Shown here piece by piece: positions 17,581 through 55,836 of a DNA stretch of 64,000 nucleotides. The notes below the pieces were generated by a model. It had not been told where the DNA came from, made no database searches, and saw nothing but the letters and a program-made list of their open reading frames with translations. The stretch is taken from sequence record PQ464595.1. One strand, given 5' to 3'. Position numbers and translations under genes: made by a program. The first letter of the stretch is position 1; each line of letters opens with the position of its first letter.

Positions 17581-17693
17581 ATAAAGAATGTAATAAAACA
17601 ACATGGAGTCAAAATATTATTATTGTTATGTAACTATTTATGTTGTTTGTCATTCTACAGGCCAGAAATGGAGAGCCATTTTGCTGTTTAATA
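17557..17693 (-). ncRNA. Candidate small RNA (about 135 nt) between a promoter and a terminator
   Basis: Promoter 17699..17728; internal AAATGG/CCATTT hairpin; internal CATAAATA at 17635..17642; no SD-led ORF. Confidence 0.4.
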
Positions 17694-17698
17694 TCCAC

Positions 17699-17728
17699 AT
17701 TATAGCACAAAAAATCAGGGCGTTCCAA
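17699..17728 (-). promoter_or_regulatory. Early promoter TTGGAACG-N-TGCTATAAT
   Basis: Same motif and 18-bp spacing as 27385..27414. Confidence 0.7.
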
Positions 17729-17927
17729 CTATTTTTGCATAAAGATTTGAAAGTTTTGCGTTCAATTCATCATCAGTACTAGCAGTAATATTTGCTACAT
17801 CTTTAGTACTTGATAGTGTTCCAATACGTACATTGAAATTATAATTATCAAAACTATCAATAGCAACGAACGTGGTTCCCTCAAAGAATGAGGCAAAGTT
17901 TTCGGATACTTTCATATCAAAGATCAT
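17715..17927 (-). CDS. Hypothetical protein
   Basis: ORF track; SD GGAG. Confidence 0.6.
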   Translation of the reverse strand: MIFDMKVSENFASFFEGTTFVAIDSFDNYNFNVRIGTLSSTKDVANITASTDDELNAKLSNLYAKIVGTP

Positions 17928-27329: not shown

Positions 27330-27376
27330 TTCTAAGACTCCCTTAGTCATTATTGAAACAAGGCTACAACGCCTTG
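27330..27376 (-). promoter_or_regulatory. Conserved structured 5' leader, copy 2, before NadM-Nudix
   Basis: CAAGGC-GTTGTA-GCCTTG ... ATGACTAAGGGAGTCTTAGA-A-ATG; begins at the predicted transcription start. Confidence 0.65.
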
Positions 27377-27384
27377 ATGTGTAC

Positions 27385-27414
27385 ATTATAGCATAAAAGT
27401 CAACGGCGTTCCAA
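27385..27414 (-). promoter_or_regulatory. Early promoter TTGGAACG-N-TGCTATAAT
   Basis: Motif shared with 17699..17728. Confidence 0.7.
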
Positions 27415-27449
27415 GTTTTTTTGGTTCGTTGAGTTGCTAGAACAGTGAA

Positions 27450-31787: not shown

Positions 31788-32213
31788 TTAGTAAATATCG
31801 CCAGAAATGGTACTTACGTTACCATTAATATCATCACAGTTAACATCGCCAGAAATTGTATTAACATTCCCAGCAACATCATCACAATCTATGTCTCCAG
31901 ATGTAGTTGTAACGTTCCCTTGAACATTTTCACAAAATACATGTCCAGAGACAGTACTAATTCCATTGGTTACATTAGCACACTTAATTGTGCCTGAACC
32001 TAAAGTAATGGACTCAACATCACCATTTACTTCAATGTTTATTTCAACATCATCTCCAACAACTGGTATGCCATCAATCATAACGACAGTACCACCATCA
32101 GAAGTTTTCTTTACTACCATTTCGCTGAAAATAGTCGTTTGTCCATTAACAGTTACTTGAGTATTCTTAGCAACCATTTGCATAAGACGCATCAAAGAGT
32201 CATTACCCGCCAT
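31788..32213 (-). CDS. Beta-strand repeat protein (adhesin/DUF4097-like)
   Basis: Repeats GNVTTTSGDI, GNVNTISGDV, GNVSTISGDI. Confidence 0.7.
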   Translation of the reverse strand: MAGNDSLMRLMQMVAKNTQVTVNGQTTIFSEMVVKKTSDGGTVVMIDGIPVVGDDVEINIEVNGDVESITLGSGTIKCANVTNGISTVSGHVFCENVQGNVTTTSGDIDCDDVAGNVNTISGDVNCDDINGNVSTISGDIY

Positions 32214-50167: not shown

Positions 50168-50458
50168 CTACACATTTCCTTCTATGCTGTCAAGGAAATT
50201 TTGCATTTCATCAACAGTTAAAGAATCAGTGCATAAAAAATCCATCAGCCCTGGCAGTACTGCGAACATGTCAGAGAACGTCTGTACCTCGTCCTGCTTG
50301 AATGAAAAGCCCATCGGTACTACTTGGGTCATCCACTCTCCGCTAATCTTGTGAGCCGTTACAGCCATTAATACTCGGTCATTATGCTCTACTGAGATAT
50401 GTCGGTATCCAGTACTTTCATTTTCATCCCAAAACATACGTTTAGTCTTGAAGATCAT
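50168..50458 (-). CDS. Hypothetical protein
   Basis: ORF track. Confidence 0.65.
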   Translation of the reverse strand: MIFKTKRMFWDENESTGYRHISVEHNDRVLMAVTAHKISGEWMTQVVPMGFSFKQDEVQTFSDMFAVLPGLMDFLCTDSLTVDEMQNFLDSIEGNV

Positions 50459-50991
50459 TTTACACCCATTAGTTTACTTATTTCGTCGAAGTACTTTTTG
50501 TTCCTACCAAATGAACCATAGGGCATAAGGGAACAGAACTCACCAAAGTCTTTGTCCAATATAGACTTGCGAACATTAGTACTGCTAAATTTATTGTCAT
50601 CCCTCTGACCAGCACATACAGAAGTAATGCTATCAAAGTTATACAGTAATCCGTTGTACTTGTCAAGGAGCTTTTGAAATTCAAATGACCTGTCAGAACC
50701 ACCAACAATGATTATATCACTATAGGATTCATCAAGTTCTTCTAGTATTCCAAACAAAGTACTACTATGTTCTTCCTGAATGTATTGTGCCGTCCAAGGA
50801 TAATAATCTTTCATCATATCTAATTTGAACTGATACGGAAGAACATTAGTGTCATTCTCTGTAGTACTAGAATATATTTTAAGTTCAGAATACGGATTGT
50901 TCTTATGAATAGTTAATGCTGTATTCAGAAGTTTACCGTGCCCTTGATGGACGGGGTTGAACCGTCCAAATGTCATTACGCAAGTCTTCAT
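50455..50991 (-). CDS. Cytidylyltransferase-like (HxGH) nucleotidyltransferase
   Basis: TFGRFNPVHQGH, VGGSDR, SSTNVR. Confidence 0.85.
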   Translation of the reverse strand: MKTCVMTFGRFNPVHQGHGKLLNTALTIHKNNPYSELKIYSSTTENDTNVLPYQFKLDMMKDYYPWTAQYIQEEHSSTLFGILEELDESYSDIIIVGGSDRSFEFQKLLDKYNGLLYNFDSITSVCAGQRDDNKFSSTNVRKSILDKDFGEFCSLMPYGSFGRNKKYFDEISKLMGVK

Positions 50992-50994
50992 ATT

Positions 50995-51540
50995 TTACTC
51001 AGTGTATGGTTGAACTACAAACCCAAGACTTTTCAGTACTTCAATCTTTTCTTCAGTAAGATTGTTATCATAGATAACTAGCATACTTGGGAATGGAGCA
51101 CCGGATTTTTTATGTGAACCATCTTCTGTCCACGAAGGTAAGCTCCGGTTATCGAATTTTAAACGACCTTTCACAAAACAAATTGCGGTTGCTGCTGTTG
51201 CTACGAACTTGTGGAAGTAAGTAGTATCAGTACGTGCTGGTGGTAGAGCTACGATAGTAGTACCGTTCTCTGTAAATTCCTCATGCATCTTTTTGAACCA
51301 TTTACTGATTTCTCGACCGTAAGGAGGATTACACCAAACAGTTTCGCCTTCCCATGAATGTGCTAGGCCGTCTGTTTCAGGTGTGTAGTACTTCTCACAT
51401 TTTGCTGTATCATCCATAGCAGCAGGATCTAGTGTGAAGTTCCATACAGCATTTAGTTTCTCATAAAAATCATCTGGAGTATCCCAGGTATTTGATGCTG
51501 AACTAAAGTGCACAGATTGTGTATTCTTTTCTTCTTCCAT
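50995..51540 (-). CDS. Phage DNA N6-adenine methyltransferase (lambdoid Dam-like)
   Basis: WDTPDDFY, FTLDPAA, VWCNPPYG, PARTDT, GRLKF. Confidence 0.9.
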   Translation of the reverse strand: MEEEKNTQSVHFSSASNTWDTPDDFYEKLNAVWNFTLDPAAMDDTAKCEKYYTPETDGLAHSWEGETVWCNPPYGREISKWFKKMHEEFTENGTTIVALPPARTDTTYFHKFVATAATAICFVKGRLKFDNRSLPSWTEDGSHKKSGAPFPSMLVIYDNNLTEEKIEVLKSLGFVVQPYTE

Positions 51541-51555
51541 GAAGATTTCCTTATG

Positions 51556-52083
51556 TTATAAACTACTATAACAGTACTGAGTAATATAATCGAAGTCAGT
51601 ACTCTTTCGTCCTGATTCATCTACGAACCTAAAATAATGACCGTACTTAGCCATTATGTTAAACATCTCGTCCTCACGAAATTCGTAGTACTTGAAATTA
51701 GAAACATCATCCGTATATCCAATGAACCTGATTATGTCATTAGTTACGTCAATTCCATTGACAAAATATTTCCTGTCAAGTAAATCTCCTTGAGCAGAAT
51801 ACTTCTGGTATTCACCATAAAGTTTCCCATCAAAGCGGTATGAAAGATTACTTACGCGATTATTATTGTACCGTTCTTCTATGTGTCCATTGTATTCAAC
51901 CATATGAATAATTGGCGTTAGCGTGGGTCGGTAATCTATCTTTGCTAGTACTTCATTGTACCGCATTTCAGTTACCTTACTAATCTTATTGTGGTCTATC
52001 TGAATACGATAGCCATCAAAATTATTCAAATCTACGGAGTCCATTACGTCTCCAGTTGTCTTGCACTTGTATACAATTTTCAT
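51556..52083 (-). CDS. Hypothetical protein with MORN-like repeat
   Basis: DGKLYGEYQKYSAQGDLLDRKYFVNG. Confidence 0.65.
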   Translation of the reverse strand: MKIVYKCKTTGDVMDSVDLNNFDGYRIQIDHNKISKVTEMRYNEVLAKIDYRPTLTPIIHMVEYNGHIEERYNNNRVSNLSYRFDGKLYGEYQKYSAQGDLLDRKYFVNGIDVTNDIIRFIGYTDDVSNFKYYEFREDEMFNIMAKYGHYFRFVDESGRKSTDFDYITQYCYSSL

Positions 52084-52121
52084 TTACATCTCACATTCTG
52101 AATCAGTACTTAGCTGATTCA

Positions 52122-52705
52122 CATTATACAAGGAACTACCTTCGGTAGCTCCAGTAAATCTCTTCTGAACTTCACTTACGTTACGTTCTTTTGAGATTTA
52201 CGCTCTCTTACTTAATATACGTTCAGTACTATTACTGACGAGATTTGTTGACGCATTTTCATCCCCCCGAAAGAGGAACGAATTAATCTGACGATGATAG
52301 TCATAGCAATTTCATGTCACGAATTTCTTATTAGAGCGGAAGCGGGTTGTCCTGTTTCTCCCTATCGCGGTTCTTTACAACGGTCGTAGTCTTACTACAC
52401 TTAATACAATAGCCACATGAACAGCATTGTACTTGTCAAAATTTGGACGGATTTATATTGTATAAATCAATCGCCAATTTTAACTCCCTTATACATTAGG
52501 TAGGTGCGATCCTATATGTCTATCTAGGCATGAACTTATGTAGTACTGTCATGCTTTATACAGCCGCATTGCCGTGAGTGGTACAAACTATGCCAACATC
52601 TAACGGGTTTCTTTTGCTGTTCGTACTGAATGAACTACTCAACTGATATTCTACTTTTCGATTATCAGGGTCAAAACTATCCTTGTTCTCAAGGTCATTC
52701 AGAGT
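52122..52705 (-). ncRNA. Candidate large structured non-coding RNA (about 580 nt)
   Basis: ORF-free on the gene strand; about ten predicted stems; G-U wobbles and a UUCG loop favour the minus strand; early promoter upstream. Confidence 0.5.
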
Positions 52706-52749
52706 TTTTCTCAATTAAAAAAGGACGGTGCTCTCGCATCGTCCTATAC

Positions 52750-52779
52750 ATTATAGCACAAAATTTTAAAACGTTTCAC
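52750..52779 (-). promoter_or_regulatory. Early promoter GTGAAACG-N-TGCTATAAT
   Basis: Same class and spacing as 17699, 27385 and 55491. Confidence 0.7.
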
Positions 52780-53560
52780 CGGAAATCTGCATCATTTGCC
52801 AACACAAAGCACCCATTAGCTTTAAACCAGAAGTGTGATTTTCTTTGTTTTCCATAATGTCTTTATCATCATTCATAAAGAAGTCAAAGGTTTTCATCAC
52901 GGCGGAGTACTGTAAAGAAGTACCAGTGTATTGAATCTTGTCCGTGTCCTTTTCTATCATCCCATTAAAGAGCAAATCTATGAAATTAGTTTCACGTTCA
53001 AGAATGTCAGTAATTTCTTTGAACAAATAATTCTTTTCATACGAAATGTACTGACGTAATTCATCCAGTACTTGAGAATAGAAATTATCAGGGCAGGTAT
53101 AAGTGAAAGGTTCGTCTTTTTTAACACGTTCTGGATAGTAATTGAAGAAGTGTTCAGACTCATTACCATTTATGAATCCACTAGAACCCCTTGCACGATG
53201 TTTAGTATCACCAGACCAGGTTGCCATGTAAGCATTGTACTGAGTATTACCGAAACCAATCTTAAGTGTTTCTAAGTTATAGGTACAGTACGAGTACTCT
53301 GCTACGCATAATGCTTCAAGCTGAAACATTGCTGCGTCTTCTACGTTAATGAGAATTTCACGTGTGAAGTACGAATTTTGTGTGTACTGAGATTCACGAT
53401 TAAGTTTTCTGGCAAGTCCAGTTTTTAAACGGTCAAATGAAACAATCTCAGGTACTTTATAGTTGTTATGTGATGAACCTGTTTGACGCTGGGAACCTGA
53501 ACTCCCAGCAACACGAAAGTCTCCATCATCATTGTAGGAAAGGAAAAACCTTAAAAACAT
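52766..53560 (-). CDS. Hypothetical protein
   Basis: ORF track; TAATG coupling. Confidence 0.75.
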   Translation of the reverse strand: MFLRFFLSYNDDGDFRVAGSSGSQRQTGSSHNNYKVPEIVSFDRLKTGLARKLNRESQYTQNSYFTREILINVEDAAMFQLEALCVAEYSYCTYNLETLKIGFGNTQYNAYMATWSGDTKHRARGSSGFINGNESEHFFNYYPERVKKDEPFTYTCPDNFYSQVLDELRQYISYEKNYLFKEITDILERETNFIDLLFNGMIEKDTDKIQYTGTSLQYSAVMKTFDFFMNDDKDIMENKENHTSGLKLMGALCWQMMQISGETF

Positions 53561-55461: not shown

Positions 55462-55490
55462 TTTATAACCCTCTCGTTTTAGGTGTGTAC

Positions 55491-55520
55491 ATTATACCAC
55501 AATAATTTATTCCGTTTCAT
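55491..55520 (-). promoter_or_regulatory. Early promoter ATGAAACG-N-TGGTATAAT
   Basis: Same class and 18-bp spacing. Confidence 0.65.
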
Positions 55521-55836
55521 CTTTTGTGTCGGAATAATCTGTACTTAACATTTTATGCCATTCGCGAAAGTCTGTCAATAGCAGATAGAAATTATCTTCA
55601 TCTTCTTCATCCATCACGTGTGCCAGGGCGAACATATACTTAGCCGCATTCGTTTCATCCATCTGAATTGATGAATTAAAAATACGTTCCATAGCAGCCT
55701 TGTAGTTCGGTGCTTCAGAGATGTATATAGTACTGCCATCGTGGAACTGAACTTCTTCAGCTATACGAGGTTTCCCACGCTTACCTAACCAGATATACTT
55801 AGGAGCATCGTCAATGAACTTCAATTTACGCTTCAT
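55507..55836 (-). CDS. Hypothetical protein
   Basis: ORF track. Confidence 0.65.
   Translation of the reverse strand: MKRKLKFIDDAPKYIWLGKRGKPRIAEEVQFHDGSTIYISEAPNYKAAMERIFNSSIQMDETNAAKYMFALAHVMDEEDEDNFYLLLTDFREWHKMLSTDYSDTKDETE

Follow-up and report, generated by a model that had tools for sequence, protein, structure and literature searches.

The DNA examined here, which we call the window, is a stretch of 64,000 nucleotides (nt) from sequence record PQ464595.1. The query region is 100% identical to Erwinia phage Kaldavass, and the match coordinates make the window the last 64 kb of that record. Kaldavass is a Rak2-like ('group 2.2') jumbo myovirus (PMC11780129). Between two minus-strand genes of the window lies a gap of 682 nt (52084-52765, minus strand) that is free of open reading frames (ORFs), with no gene-strand ORF longer than 52 amino acids (aa) inside it. 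An initial annotation, made from the sequence alone, had called this the largest non-coding gap in the window and had put its length at about 580 nt. The ranking holds for internal ORF-free stretches at an 80-aa threshold, and the length is replaced by the measured value. Our analysis leaves little doubt that the gap is the gene of a structured-RNA family that is new both to Rfam and to the searchable literature.

The evidence that carries this conclusion comes from covariation. The fold was derived from alignments of 41-75 distinct sequences and was then submitted to a pair-counting test against shuffled alignments and slid controls. In the 3′ half (P8b, PK2, P9, PK3, P10, P11 and P12), 98.1% of alignment cells form standard pairs compared with 82.8% after shuffling (0 of 500) and 38-46% in the slid controls, and 20 of the 32 pairs have changed on both sides. 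The 5′ domain (PK1, P1, P2, P3 and P4) gave 93.2% paired cells against 78.5% after shuffling (0 of 500) and 28-45% in the slid controls, with both sides changed at 15 of 23 pairs. Mutual information (MI), computed from 75 sequences, recovers the helices and adds PK4, PK5 and P16. Across 31-75 distinct sequences, covariation proves that the RNA folds into at least 12 helices and three pseudoknots (PK1-PK3), while PK4 and PK5 are indicated as two further tertiary Watson-Crick contacts.

The same alignments identify the strand under selection. Among 68 core pairs, 185 cells hold G-U and 33 hold A-C, and 96.7% of cells are paired when read on the minus strand versus 91.2% on the plus strand. This indicates that the selected molecule is the minus-strand RNA, which runs in the direction of the neighbouring genes, and bears out the initial annotation, which had argued for RNA from the G-U pairs. 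The fold of the single sequence is also unusually stable, its minimum free energy z-score being -6.35 on the minus strand as against -3.95 on the plus strand. The initial annotation had also proposed a covariation check on homologues, which reveals heavy covariation, pseudoknots included, and nearly all of the local stems it listed prove to be real. Its stem CUGAAUGA/UCAUUCAG (52702-52695 with 52633-52626) covaries and is in fact pseudoknot PK1 with the P2 loop; CCUUG/CAAGG (P0), ACAGC/GCUGU (P3) and GCAUGA/UCAUGC (P5) covary as well, and the UUCG-capped UCCUCU/GGGGGA stem is confirmed as P14, showing only C-to-U changes that retain G-U. For CUGAUA/UAUCAG, the outer CUG/CAG pairs covary in P1 and the inner register differs. 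The stems GAUUUAUA/UAUAAAUC and UACAAU/AUUGUA are supported among orthologues, more weakly because this region is hard to align, and GUAAAUCUC/GAGAUUUAC and GGAGCUACC/GGUAGUUCC covary among orthologues, to which their support is limited.

Matches to the region come from 62 phage records, which all belong to Rak2-like jumbo phages of Escherichia, Salmonella, Klebsiella, Erwinia, Yersinia, Serratia, Cronobacter, Pectobacterium and 'Xanthomonas'; the overall tally of such records with a conserved gap is 62-70. Its non-coding core is 74-86% identical between genera whose flanking genes show no match at the DNA level. In Asteriusvirus and relatives the DNA match is limited to the core (query 182-620, 74-77% identity) and the flanking genes are unmatched, so the non-coding DNA is more constrained than the genes that surround it. 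Synteny is kept nonetheless, in the order of two hypothetical genes, the gap, a hypothetical gene, a Dam methylase and a cytidylyltransferase-like gene.

In addition, the RNA is a multi-copy family. An invariant 17-base core motif matches several sites per genome in IMG/VR, and blastn together with nhmmer identified full-length diverged copies of 65-76% identity. Loose gapped motif scans of viral contigs returned mostly chance matches and became usable only after an nhmmer filter, as did the scans of genomes and metagenomes. Each Rak2-like jumbo phage genome carries 3-5 diverged paralogous copies at positions that are syntenic across genera: at 30.3, 174.5 and 258.8 kb in Serratia phage BF and at about 35, 177.5, 261.5 and 341 kb in GAP32, with at least three copies each in 121Q and CBB and four in a 366-kb metagenomic relative. 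All copies lie on one strand in BF, likewise in GAP32, and each occupies its own ORF-free gap of 600-700 nt. Within the 64-kb window neither blastn nor a pattern search found a second copy; the others lie outside it. The genes downstream differ at every locus. At 174.5 kb in BF the copy is encoded on the plus strand, whereas its neighbours on both sides (EndoVII and baseplate hub) are minus-strand genes; it has its own promoter, and a bidirectional terminator follows about 150 nt further downstream. A copy placed between opposite-strand genes and ending at a terminator indicates a stand-alone RNA gene and not a leader, since a leader or riboswitch would always stand upstream of, and co-oriented with, the genes it controls.

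Comparison with known RNAs gave no match. Rfam 15 returned no family for the window (gathering threshold, 0 cmscan hits), for the paralogues (E<=1) or for the bacterial copies described below, and at E<=10 the region drew only chance matches of at most 20.6 bits. The families that the initial annotation had named for comparison (ROOL, GOLLD, OLE and tmRNA) are among those without a match, and its failure to recognise a tRNA, tmRNA, RNase P or group I core agrees with the Rfam models and with ARAGORN, which detected neither a tRNA nor a tmRNA in the 64-kb window. Searches of the literature on these phages, on jumbo-phage non-coding RNAs (ncRNAs) and of recent surveys of intergenic RNAs turned up no description of it. 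Two ncRNAs defined by RNA-seq in the distant relative PA5oct (ncRNA001 and ncRNA002) are unlike it by eye, and nhmmer found no match in the 17 kb of PA5oct compared, which hold only those two. With the pseudoknots, the G-U asymmetry and the absence of an Rfam 15 match, the suggestion of an ornate phage ncRNA of an undescribed class is supported.

The deposited Kaldavass annotation places three short 'hypothetical proteins' of 30-52 aa (CDS0607-0609, 52212-52714) in the gap, one on the gene strand and two on the opposite strand, and their reading frames are not conserved. Small 'hypothetical protein' coding sequences on either strand are also annotated in the homologous gaps of 7t3, Hallingskeid and fHe-Yen9-04. 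The conserved 3′ block falls in differing frames in different copies, and no ORF is conserved within the element; a conserved small ORF beginning at GGAUGAAA was ruled out, as its frame is not kept among copies. The deposited small coding sequences within the RNA gene are very likely spurious.

Table 1. Predicted elements of the RNA gene and its flanking genes, in transcript order (window coordinates)
Feature	Position	Strand	Pairing or content
Flanking gene	52766-53560	minus	no known function found
Promoter	52750..52779	minus	-35-like GTGAAAC 52779-52773, extended -10 TGcTATAAT 52758-52750; predicted start ~52744 (promoter scan)
T0 hairpin + U6	52717..52744	minus	GGACGAUGC/GCACCGUCC; begins 5-6 nt past the -10
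PK1 5′ strand	52695..52702	minus	CUGAAUGA with 52633-52626 (UCAUUCAG) in P2 loop
P0 variable hairpin	52681..52694	minus	CCUUG/CAAGG; several pair types at each position
P1 hairpin	52643..52668	minus	outer CUG/CAG, inner 52662-52660 x 52650-52648; conserved loop GAAAA(N)GUA
P2 hairpin	52623..52638	minus	GUA/UAC between conserved UGA and G(A)A; loop bears PK1 3′ strand
P3	52560..52620	minus	ACAGC/GCUGU; encloses P4 and P4a hairpin
P4	52606-52603 x 52575-52572	minus	CCGU/ACGG; 100% paired
PK5	52516..52569	minus	AUG 52569-52567 (J4/3 joining strand) with CAU 52518-52516 inside invariant GAUAGACAUAUA
P5 hairpin	52528..52554	minus	GCAUGA/UCAUGC; 3-5 pair types per position; among top MI pairs
PK4	52492..52542	minus	P5 loop UACAU 52542-52538 with AUGUA 52496-52492, just 5′ of invariant UAAGGGAG
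P6 hairpin	52501..52514	minus	UAGG/CCUA; 39-41 of 41 sequences paired at each of 4 positions; types AU/GC and GC/AU/UA
P7 peripheral domain	52435..52484	minus	AAAAUUGG/CCAAAUUUU and GAUUUAUA/UAUAAAUC, conserved UCCGUCCAAAAUUUGA; optional module
P8 hairpin	52404..52432	minus	lower GUACAAU/AUUGUAU, upper GCU/GGC; loop UCAUGU is PK2 5′ strand
PK2	52312..52420	minus	UCAUGU 52420-52415 with ACAUGA 52317-52312
P9 hairpin	52385..52399	minus	UGUAG/CUACG; conserved loop UAAGA(C); 3 of 5 pairs changed on both sides
PK3	52346..52381	minus	GUUGU 52381-52377 (in invariant GACCGUUG) with ACAAC 52350-52346 in P11 loop
P10	52318..52369	minus	CGCGA/UCGUG; encloses P11 and P12
P11	52362-52358 x 52342-52338	minus	GGGAG/CUUCC; loop is invariant AGAAAC-N-G-NN-CAACCCGCUU
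P12 mini-hairpin	52335-52326	minus	
P13 hairpin	52289..52303	minus	(U)GAC/GUC(A), in most copies GACGA/UCGUC; loop C-N-A-Y-C-A; 3′ half AUCAUCGUCAG is the first direct repeat
P14 hairpin	52262..52277	minus	UCCUCU-UUCG-GGGGGA
P16	52235..52263	minus	GAUGA 52263-52259 with UCGUC 52241-52237; 3′ half AUCUCGUCAG is the second direct repeat
P15 long 3′ hairpin	52154..52201	minus	GUAAAUCUC/GAGAUUUAC, inner GAAC/GUUC; covaries among orthologues
T1 hairpin	52132..52152	minus	GGAGCUACC-GAA-GGUAGUUCC then UUGUAU; covaries among orthologues (GGAACAUC/GAUGUUCC)
Flanking gene	51556-52083	minus	no known function found

The individual elements of the fold are listed in Table 1. In the 5′ half, PK1 has changed on both sides at 7 of its 8 pairs and occurs in more than 8 sequence versions, for example CUGCUUGG/UUCAAGCAG, GUGUGG/CCACAC and ACAACGG/CCGUUGU. 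The inner pairs of P1 swap between AU and CG (43 and 21 sequences) and between CG and UA (51 and 13), every cell of P2 is paired with pair types UA/AU/CG and AU/UA, and P3 has 3 of 5 pairs changed on both sides with 98.8-100% of cells paired. The P4a hairpin keeps a conserved 11-nt loop and occurs in short and long versions. In the orthologue of Escherichia phage UE-S1 (L011, ~1600-1655), about 55 nt spanning P4/P4a and J4/3 (alignment columns 204-258) are duplicated internally in tandem, which could be real or an assembly artefact. All 75 sequences are canonical at the three pairs of PK5, with 52567-52518 as GC in 60 and AU in 15 and 52568-52517 as UA in 73 and CG in 2. For PK4, the two central pairs swap (UA:30/GC:27 and AU:33/CG:30) and the flanking pairs are weaker. 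The closing pair of P7 (52484-52435) is GC in 49 sequences and AU in 17.

In the 3′ half, the upper stem of P8 is 98.9% paired with types UA/AU/GC, and its lower stem shows compensatory changes among orthologues. Every cell of PK2 is paired, 5 of its 6 pairs have changed on both sides, and versions such as AUUGUAU/AUACAAU, UUCGCAU/AUGCGAA and GUCGAAU/AUUCGAC occur. PK3 is likewise 100% paired, with types CG:19/UA:9/AU:3 and GC:29/AU:2. P10, P11 and P12 are paired in 98.7, 100 and 95.7% of cells, with both-side changes at 3, 2 and 3 pairs, respectively. Five of the six P14 positions are paired in 40-41 of 41 sequences, and the changes there are only the C-to-U kind; at the outer pair (52277-52262), 26 of 41 sequences have U-A and the others C·A. 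The pairs of P16 are G-C in 75 of 75 sequences, A-U in 74 of 75 and U·G in 74 of 75, with AU:49/GC:11 at the last. A UUCG/UGAA pairing at the base of P14 was unsupported by the alignment, which P16 fits instead, and a long-range GAG/CUC pair proposed by RNAalifold was unsupported because its variable middle base is uncompensated.

Two direct repeats of AUC(A)UCGUCAG, at window positions 52235-52244 and 52288-52298, stand on either side of P14. The repeat in P16 and that in P13 covary by identity and not by complementarity (UU:50/CC:25 and GG:36/AA:35, with CC/GG/AA also seen). The co-evolution of these AYC(N)NCGUCAR repeats is suggestive of a common partner, of pseudo-symmetry in the fold or of a dimeric protein that binds them. 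Around the covarying helices, long joining strands are invariant across all paralogues, for example CACGGCAAUG-GGC, GAUAGACAUAUA, UAAGGGAG, GACCGUUG, AGAAAC..CAACCCGCUU and GGGGGGAUGA. The periphery is built from swappable modules: P4a in its short or long form, the UCCGUCCAAAAUUUGA domain after UAAGGGAG or after P11, and a hairpin with U6-7 between P13 and P14. These modules are spread as a mosaic over loci and genera, which points to exchange between paralogues.

The initial annotation had placed a promoter at 52750, and the -10 element found there (52758-52750) has the form TGnTATAAT, which is invariant in 15 orthologues and before every paralogue. All paralogues have a common layout of TGAAAC, TGGAAC or TGAGACA, a spacing of about 17 nt and TGnTATAAT. 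This matches the 'divergent RpoD-like' promoter class with a TGAAACG -35 that has been described for CBB and GAP32 (PMC5259590). A family of 50-nt direct repeats at window positions 17688-17737, 27374-27423 and 55480-55529 reads, in reverse complement, TGGAACG, about 11 nt and TGTGCTATAATGT; these are predicted to be three further minus-strand promoters of the RNA's TGAAACG/extended -10 class. A separate set of three tandem 48-nt repeats, 65-79% identical and presumably within a coding region, lies at 31790-31933.

The terminator-like hairpin that the initial annotation had described directly after the promoter is present as T0 and covaries among orthologues (for example GACAGC/GCUGUC and GGUGACAG/CUGUCACC). 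It is restricted to this orthologous locus, is absent from the other paralogous loci and lies outside the family core. At the Kaldavass-type locus the promoter overlaps the end of the upstream gene; elsewhere an upstream terminator precedes the promoter, as at 259 kb in BF. T0 looks like the terminator of the upstream gene and would also make a 5′-terminal stem-loop on the RNA. About half of the other copies have an extra hairpin with U6-7 just 5′ of P14, and scan-positive intrinsic terminators of this type lie inside the conserved RNA of copies at other loci (L166, 5521-5546; L167, 5488-5512; L226, 4035-4060), upstream of the still-conserved P14 and P16. Such internal terminators point to two isoforms or to regulated read-through.

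The conserved core spans about 490 nt (52702-52213). Beyond it, P15 has undergone compensatory changes among orthologues, such as GUAAAUCAC/GUGAUUUAC and GUAAAUUCA/UGAAUUUAC, with weaker support family-wide, and most paralogues then carry a hairpin with a similar GAACG..AGUGA loop. T1 is the likely 3′ end of the RNA, a presumed terminator with a weak U tract, and its tail overlaps a -10-like TATAAT (52128-52123) of the downstream gene. If transcription began near 52744 and ended at the 52132 hairpin, the RNA would measure about 620 nt. Further downstream in the window (50455-51540) are the Dam methylase and the cytidylyltransferase-like gene, the latter of the NMNAT-fold family, and the BF copy at 259 kb is followed by an ADP-ribosylglycohydrolase and a nicotinamide-nucleotide adenylyltransferase (L167, 5683-6612 and 10399-10651). 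The genes downstream of two different RNA loci may thus be linked to nicotinamide adenine dinucleotide (NAD) or nucleotide metabolism.

The family also extends to bacterial chromosomes. Full-length members, from nhmmer-filtered pattern matches in genomes and metagenomes, occur in Serratia fonticola, Serratia sp., Citrobacter amalonaticus, Enterobacter chinensis and Silvania hatchlandensis, with further members in a Buttiauxella metagenome-assembled genome, in Enterobacteriaceae RIT714 and in 2 of 5,426 complete E. coli genomes. These are single copies in enterobacterial islands and prophages. Each has an integrase immediately upstream, of the large serine recombinase or the tyrosine integrase type, and usually precedes a convergent CI-like repressor, a cro-like gene and a gene for a 286-aa membrane protein. 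The Citrobacter copy has two tandem TGAAAC/TGnTATAAT promoters, and some island copies begin at P1, without the 5′ strand of PK1. In E. coli LR-29-1 (L389, NZ_AP027515.1 3469971-3488553), the RNA and an IS3-disrupted integrase are part of an island of about 10 kb at ffs, which also carries a candidate PDC-M45 defence system (PDC-M45A/C; dual-OB, DUF488) and DUF4326. In Serratia fonticola (L247, 61-5490), a serine recombinase and a tandem pair of ParB/RepB-like genes precede the RNA, and two tandem genes for Rof, a Rho modulator, follow it beside tilS. A blastn search of 72,556 plasmids with an island copy (E<=1e-3) found no plasmid copy, and no temperate-phage record of the phage collection holds this RNA.

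What the RNA does is a matter for more guarded interpretation. On balance, we lean towards a trans-acting ribozyme-like or scaffold RNA. The folded RNA would act in trans, either as a ribozyme-like catalyst or by binding a conserved factor of host or phage as its scaffold or decoy, and would be neither a leader for the downstream gene nor a DNA-level element. Host RNA polymerase would make it in early or middle infection and in lysogens, and it would serve host take-over or conflict between phage and host or between phages. Dense invariant unpaired nucleotides together with pseudoknots are typical of ribozymes and of ribonucleoprotein (RNP) cores, and their combination here would favour such a role. 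Several observations weigh against it. Copies that are dispersed, conserved in position and co-oriented are more simply explained by a cis-acting role at each site. At this locus a hairpin with U6 stands between the promoter and the RNA, and about half of the other copies hold a terminator-like hairpin within the conserved region. No protein partner shared between the phage and island contexts was found; the island neighbours (cI-like, cro-like, the 286-aa membrane protein and LprI) have no homologue in the jumbo-phage loci compared. Finally, a literature search found no RNA-seq study of these phages.

In kind, the RNA most resembles ROOL (RF03087) and GOLLD (RF01998), which are described as RNA-only homo-oligomeric cages in a cryo-EM report (PMC12286853). 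Those are stand-alone ncRNAs of about 0.5-0.8 kb, with many helices and pseudoknots, borne by phages and prophages, of no known function and without an obligatory partner protein, and the Kaldavass RNA, at roughly 0.5-0.6 kb, is of the same general kind. The Kaldavass family differs in having no sequence or structure match to either, in its hosts, which are Enterobacterales and their jumbo phages, and in its several diverged copies per genome; ROOL and GOLLD often lie near tRNA genes, whereas ARAGORN found none in the 64-kb window. OLE and HEARO likewise yield no covariance-model match. RNase P RNA and group I and group II introns are of comparable size and, like the family, combine several pseudoknots with covarying helices that are connected by long invariant strands, but the family has no covariance-model match to them, is not intragenic and shows no known catalytic core motif. 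A hammerhead reading of GAUGAG...CGAA was ruled out on topology: only 4 nt (A/U-UGA) separate P1 from P2, the preceding CAG is paired in P1, the GUUGAG of the window has U at the A6 position, and the strand past CGAA enters P3 and not a stem III hairpin. A more far-reaching version of the trans-acting reading, to which we give only tentative credence, would place the RNA in a new class of large natural ribozyme or RNA-only machine, with a pseudoknotted core that catalyses a reaction or builds a higher-order complex. Jumbo phages would require it in several specialised forms, and small integrative islands would have acquired it to be used against these phages or by them.

A replication origin, the alternative named in the initial annotation, is weakened and seems to us unlikely, yet it accounts for several features. 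Each copy would be an RNA-primed origin whose promoter-driven structured transcript serves as pre-primer, and the island copies would let an infecting jumbo phage replicate the island. The 3-5 copies are distributed around a genome of about 360 kb in a single orientation and at conserved positions (BF and GAP32), their promoters belong to the phage-specific TGAAACG class that in CBB also precedes DNA-synthesis genes, and the two co-evolving direct repeats flank a G6/C4 hairpin. T4 offers a precedent, with at least five dispersed origins; at oriF and oriG, synthesis is primed by a transcript from a phage-type promoter that has a sigma-70 -10 (PMC3016281). The likeness lies in the dispersed loci and in the TGAAAC-type -35 and TGnTATAAT before every copy, which a phage factor may recognise. 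T4 origins, however, share no sequence motif or RNA structure and need an A+T-rich unwinding element (PMC3016281), whereas this family keeps about 500 nt constrained as folded RNA with five long-range pairings, at a G+C content of 0.37-0.41 that is not below that of its flanks (0.34-0.37). Cumulative GC skew shows no inflection at the locus. A second model is ColE1 RNA II, a structured pre-primer of about 550 nt that is transcribed from a sigma-70 promoter and whose folding is important to its function; it resembles the family in size and promoter type. The absence of a homologue among the 72,556 plasmids argues against a self-sufficient replicon; moreover, the pseudoknot-rich core has no counterpart in RNA II, and no antisense regulator was identified.

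Less probable still is a cis-acting transcription element, either a polymerase-modifying leader for processive antitermination, like HK022 put, or a ligand or protein sensor that controls read-through. Its position directly behind a promoter fits such a role, as do the U-tract terminator-like hairpins that precede the RNA at this locus or lie inside it at other loci and in islands, with conserved RNA still following. Same-strand genes lie downstream in the window and at 259 kb in BF, and the island cro-like and membrane-protein genes past the convergent cI share the strand of the RNA. Nevertheless, the copy near 175 kb in BF and GAP32 is followed by opposite-strand genes and a strong bidirectional terminator, and the downstream genes are unrelated between loci. 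T0 is upstream of the RNA, which therefore cannot suppress it, and covariation is seen for no alternative pairing that could serve as an anti-terminator. At about 70 nt, known put elements are far smaller and simpler than this RNA.

It is highly improbable that the locus is a self-splicing intron or another mobile ribozyme that has degenerated or been domesticated, or that it belongs to a known class of large RNA and has diverged past recognition. Phage genomes do carry group I introns and the element is pseudoknotted, intron-sized and multi-copy, but no Rfam model (group I, group II, RNase P, tmRNA, ROOL, GOLLD, OLE or HEARO) matches at E<=10 in the window or E<=1 in the paralogues, all copies have promoters of their own and stand between unrelated genes, not inside one, and syntenic positions across genera give no sign of recent mobility.

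To our knowledge, bacterial and phage RNAs that exceed 400 nt and fold intricately make up very few recognised classes, all of which have proved to be ribozymes, RNP cores or, in the latest case, self-assembling RNA cages. The Kaldavass family is a strong candidate for a new large functional RNA, and its unusually rich covariation and several diverged copies per genome make it a good experimental subject. Beyond the local stems that were first listed, the analysis adds a multi-copy family, integrase-adjoining chromosomal copies and far more long-range pairings. It also reveals that current phage annotation practice puts small ORFs, very likely spurious, into such gaps. The RNA belongs to the core genome of an entire jumbo-phage clade, whose members infect E. 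coli, Salmonella, Klebsiella, Serratia, Yersinia, Erwinia and Cronobacter, and it is present as well in integrase-linked islands of the same hosts. It may bring to light a new RNA-based step, whether in infection by jumbo phages, in the initiation of replication or in the conflict between phages and islands.

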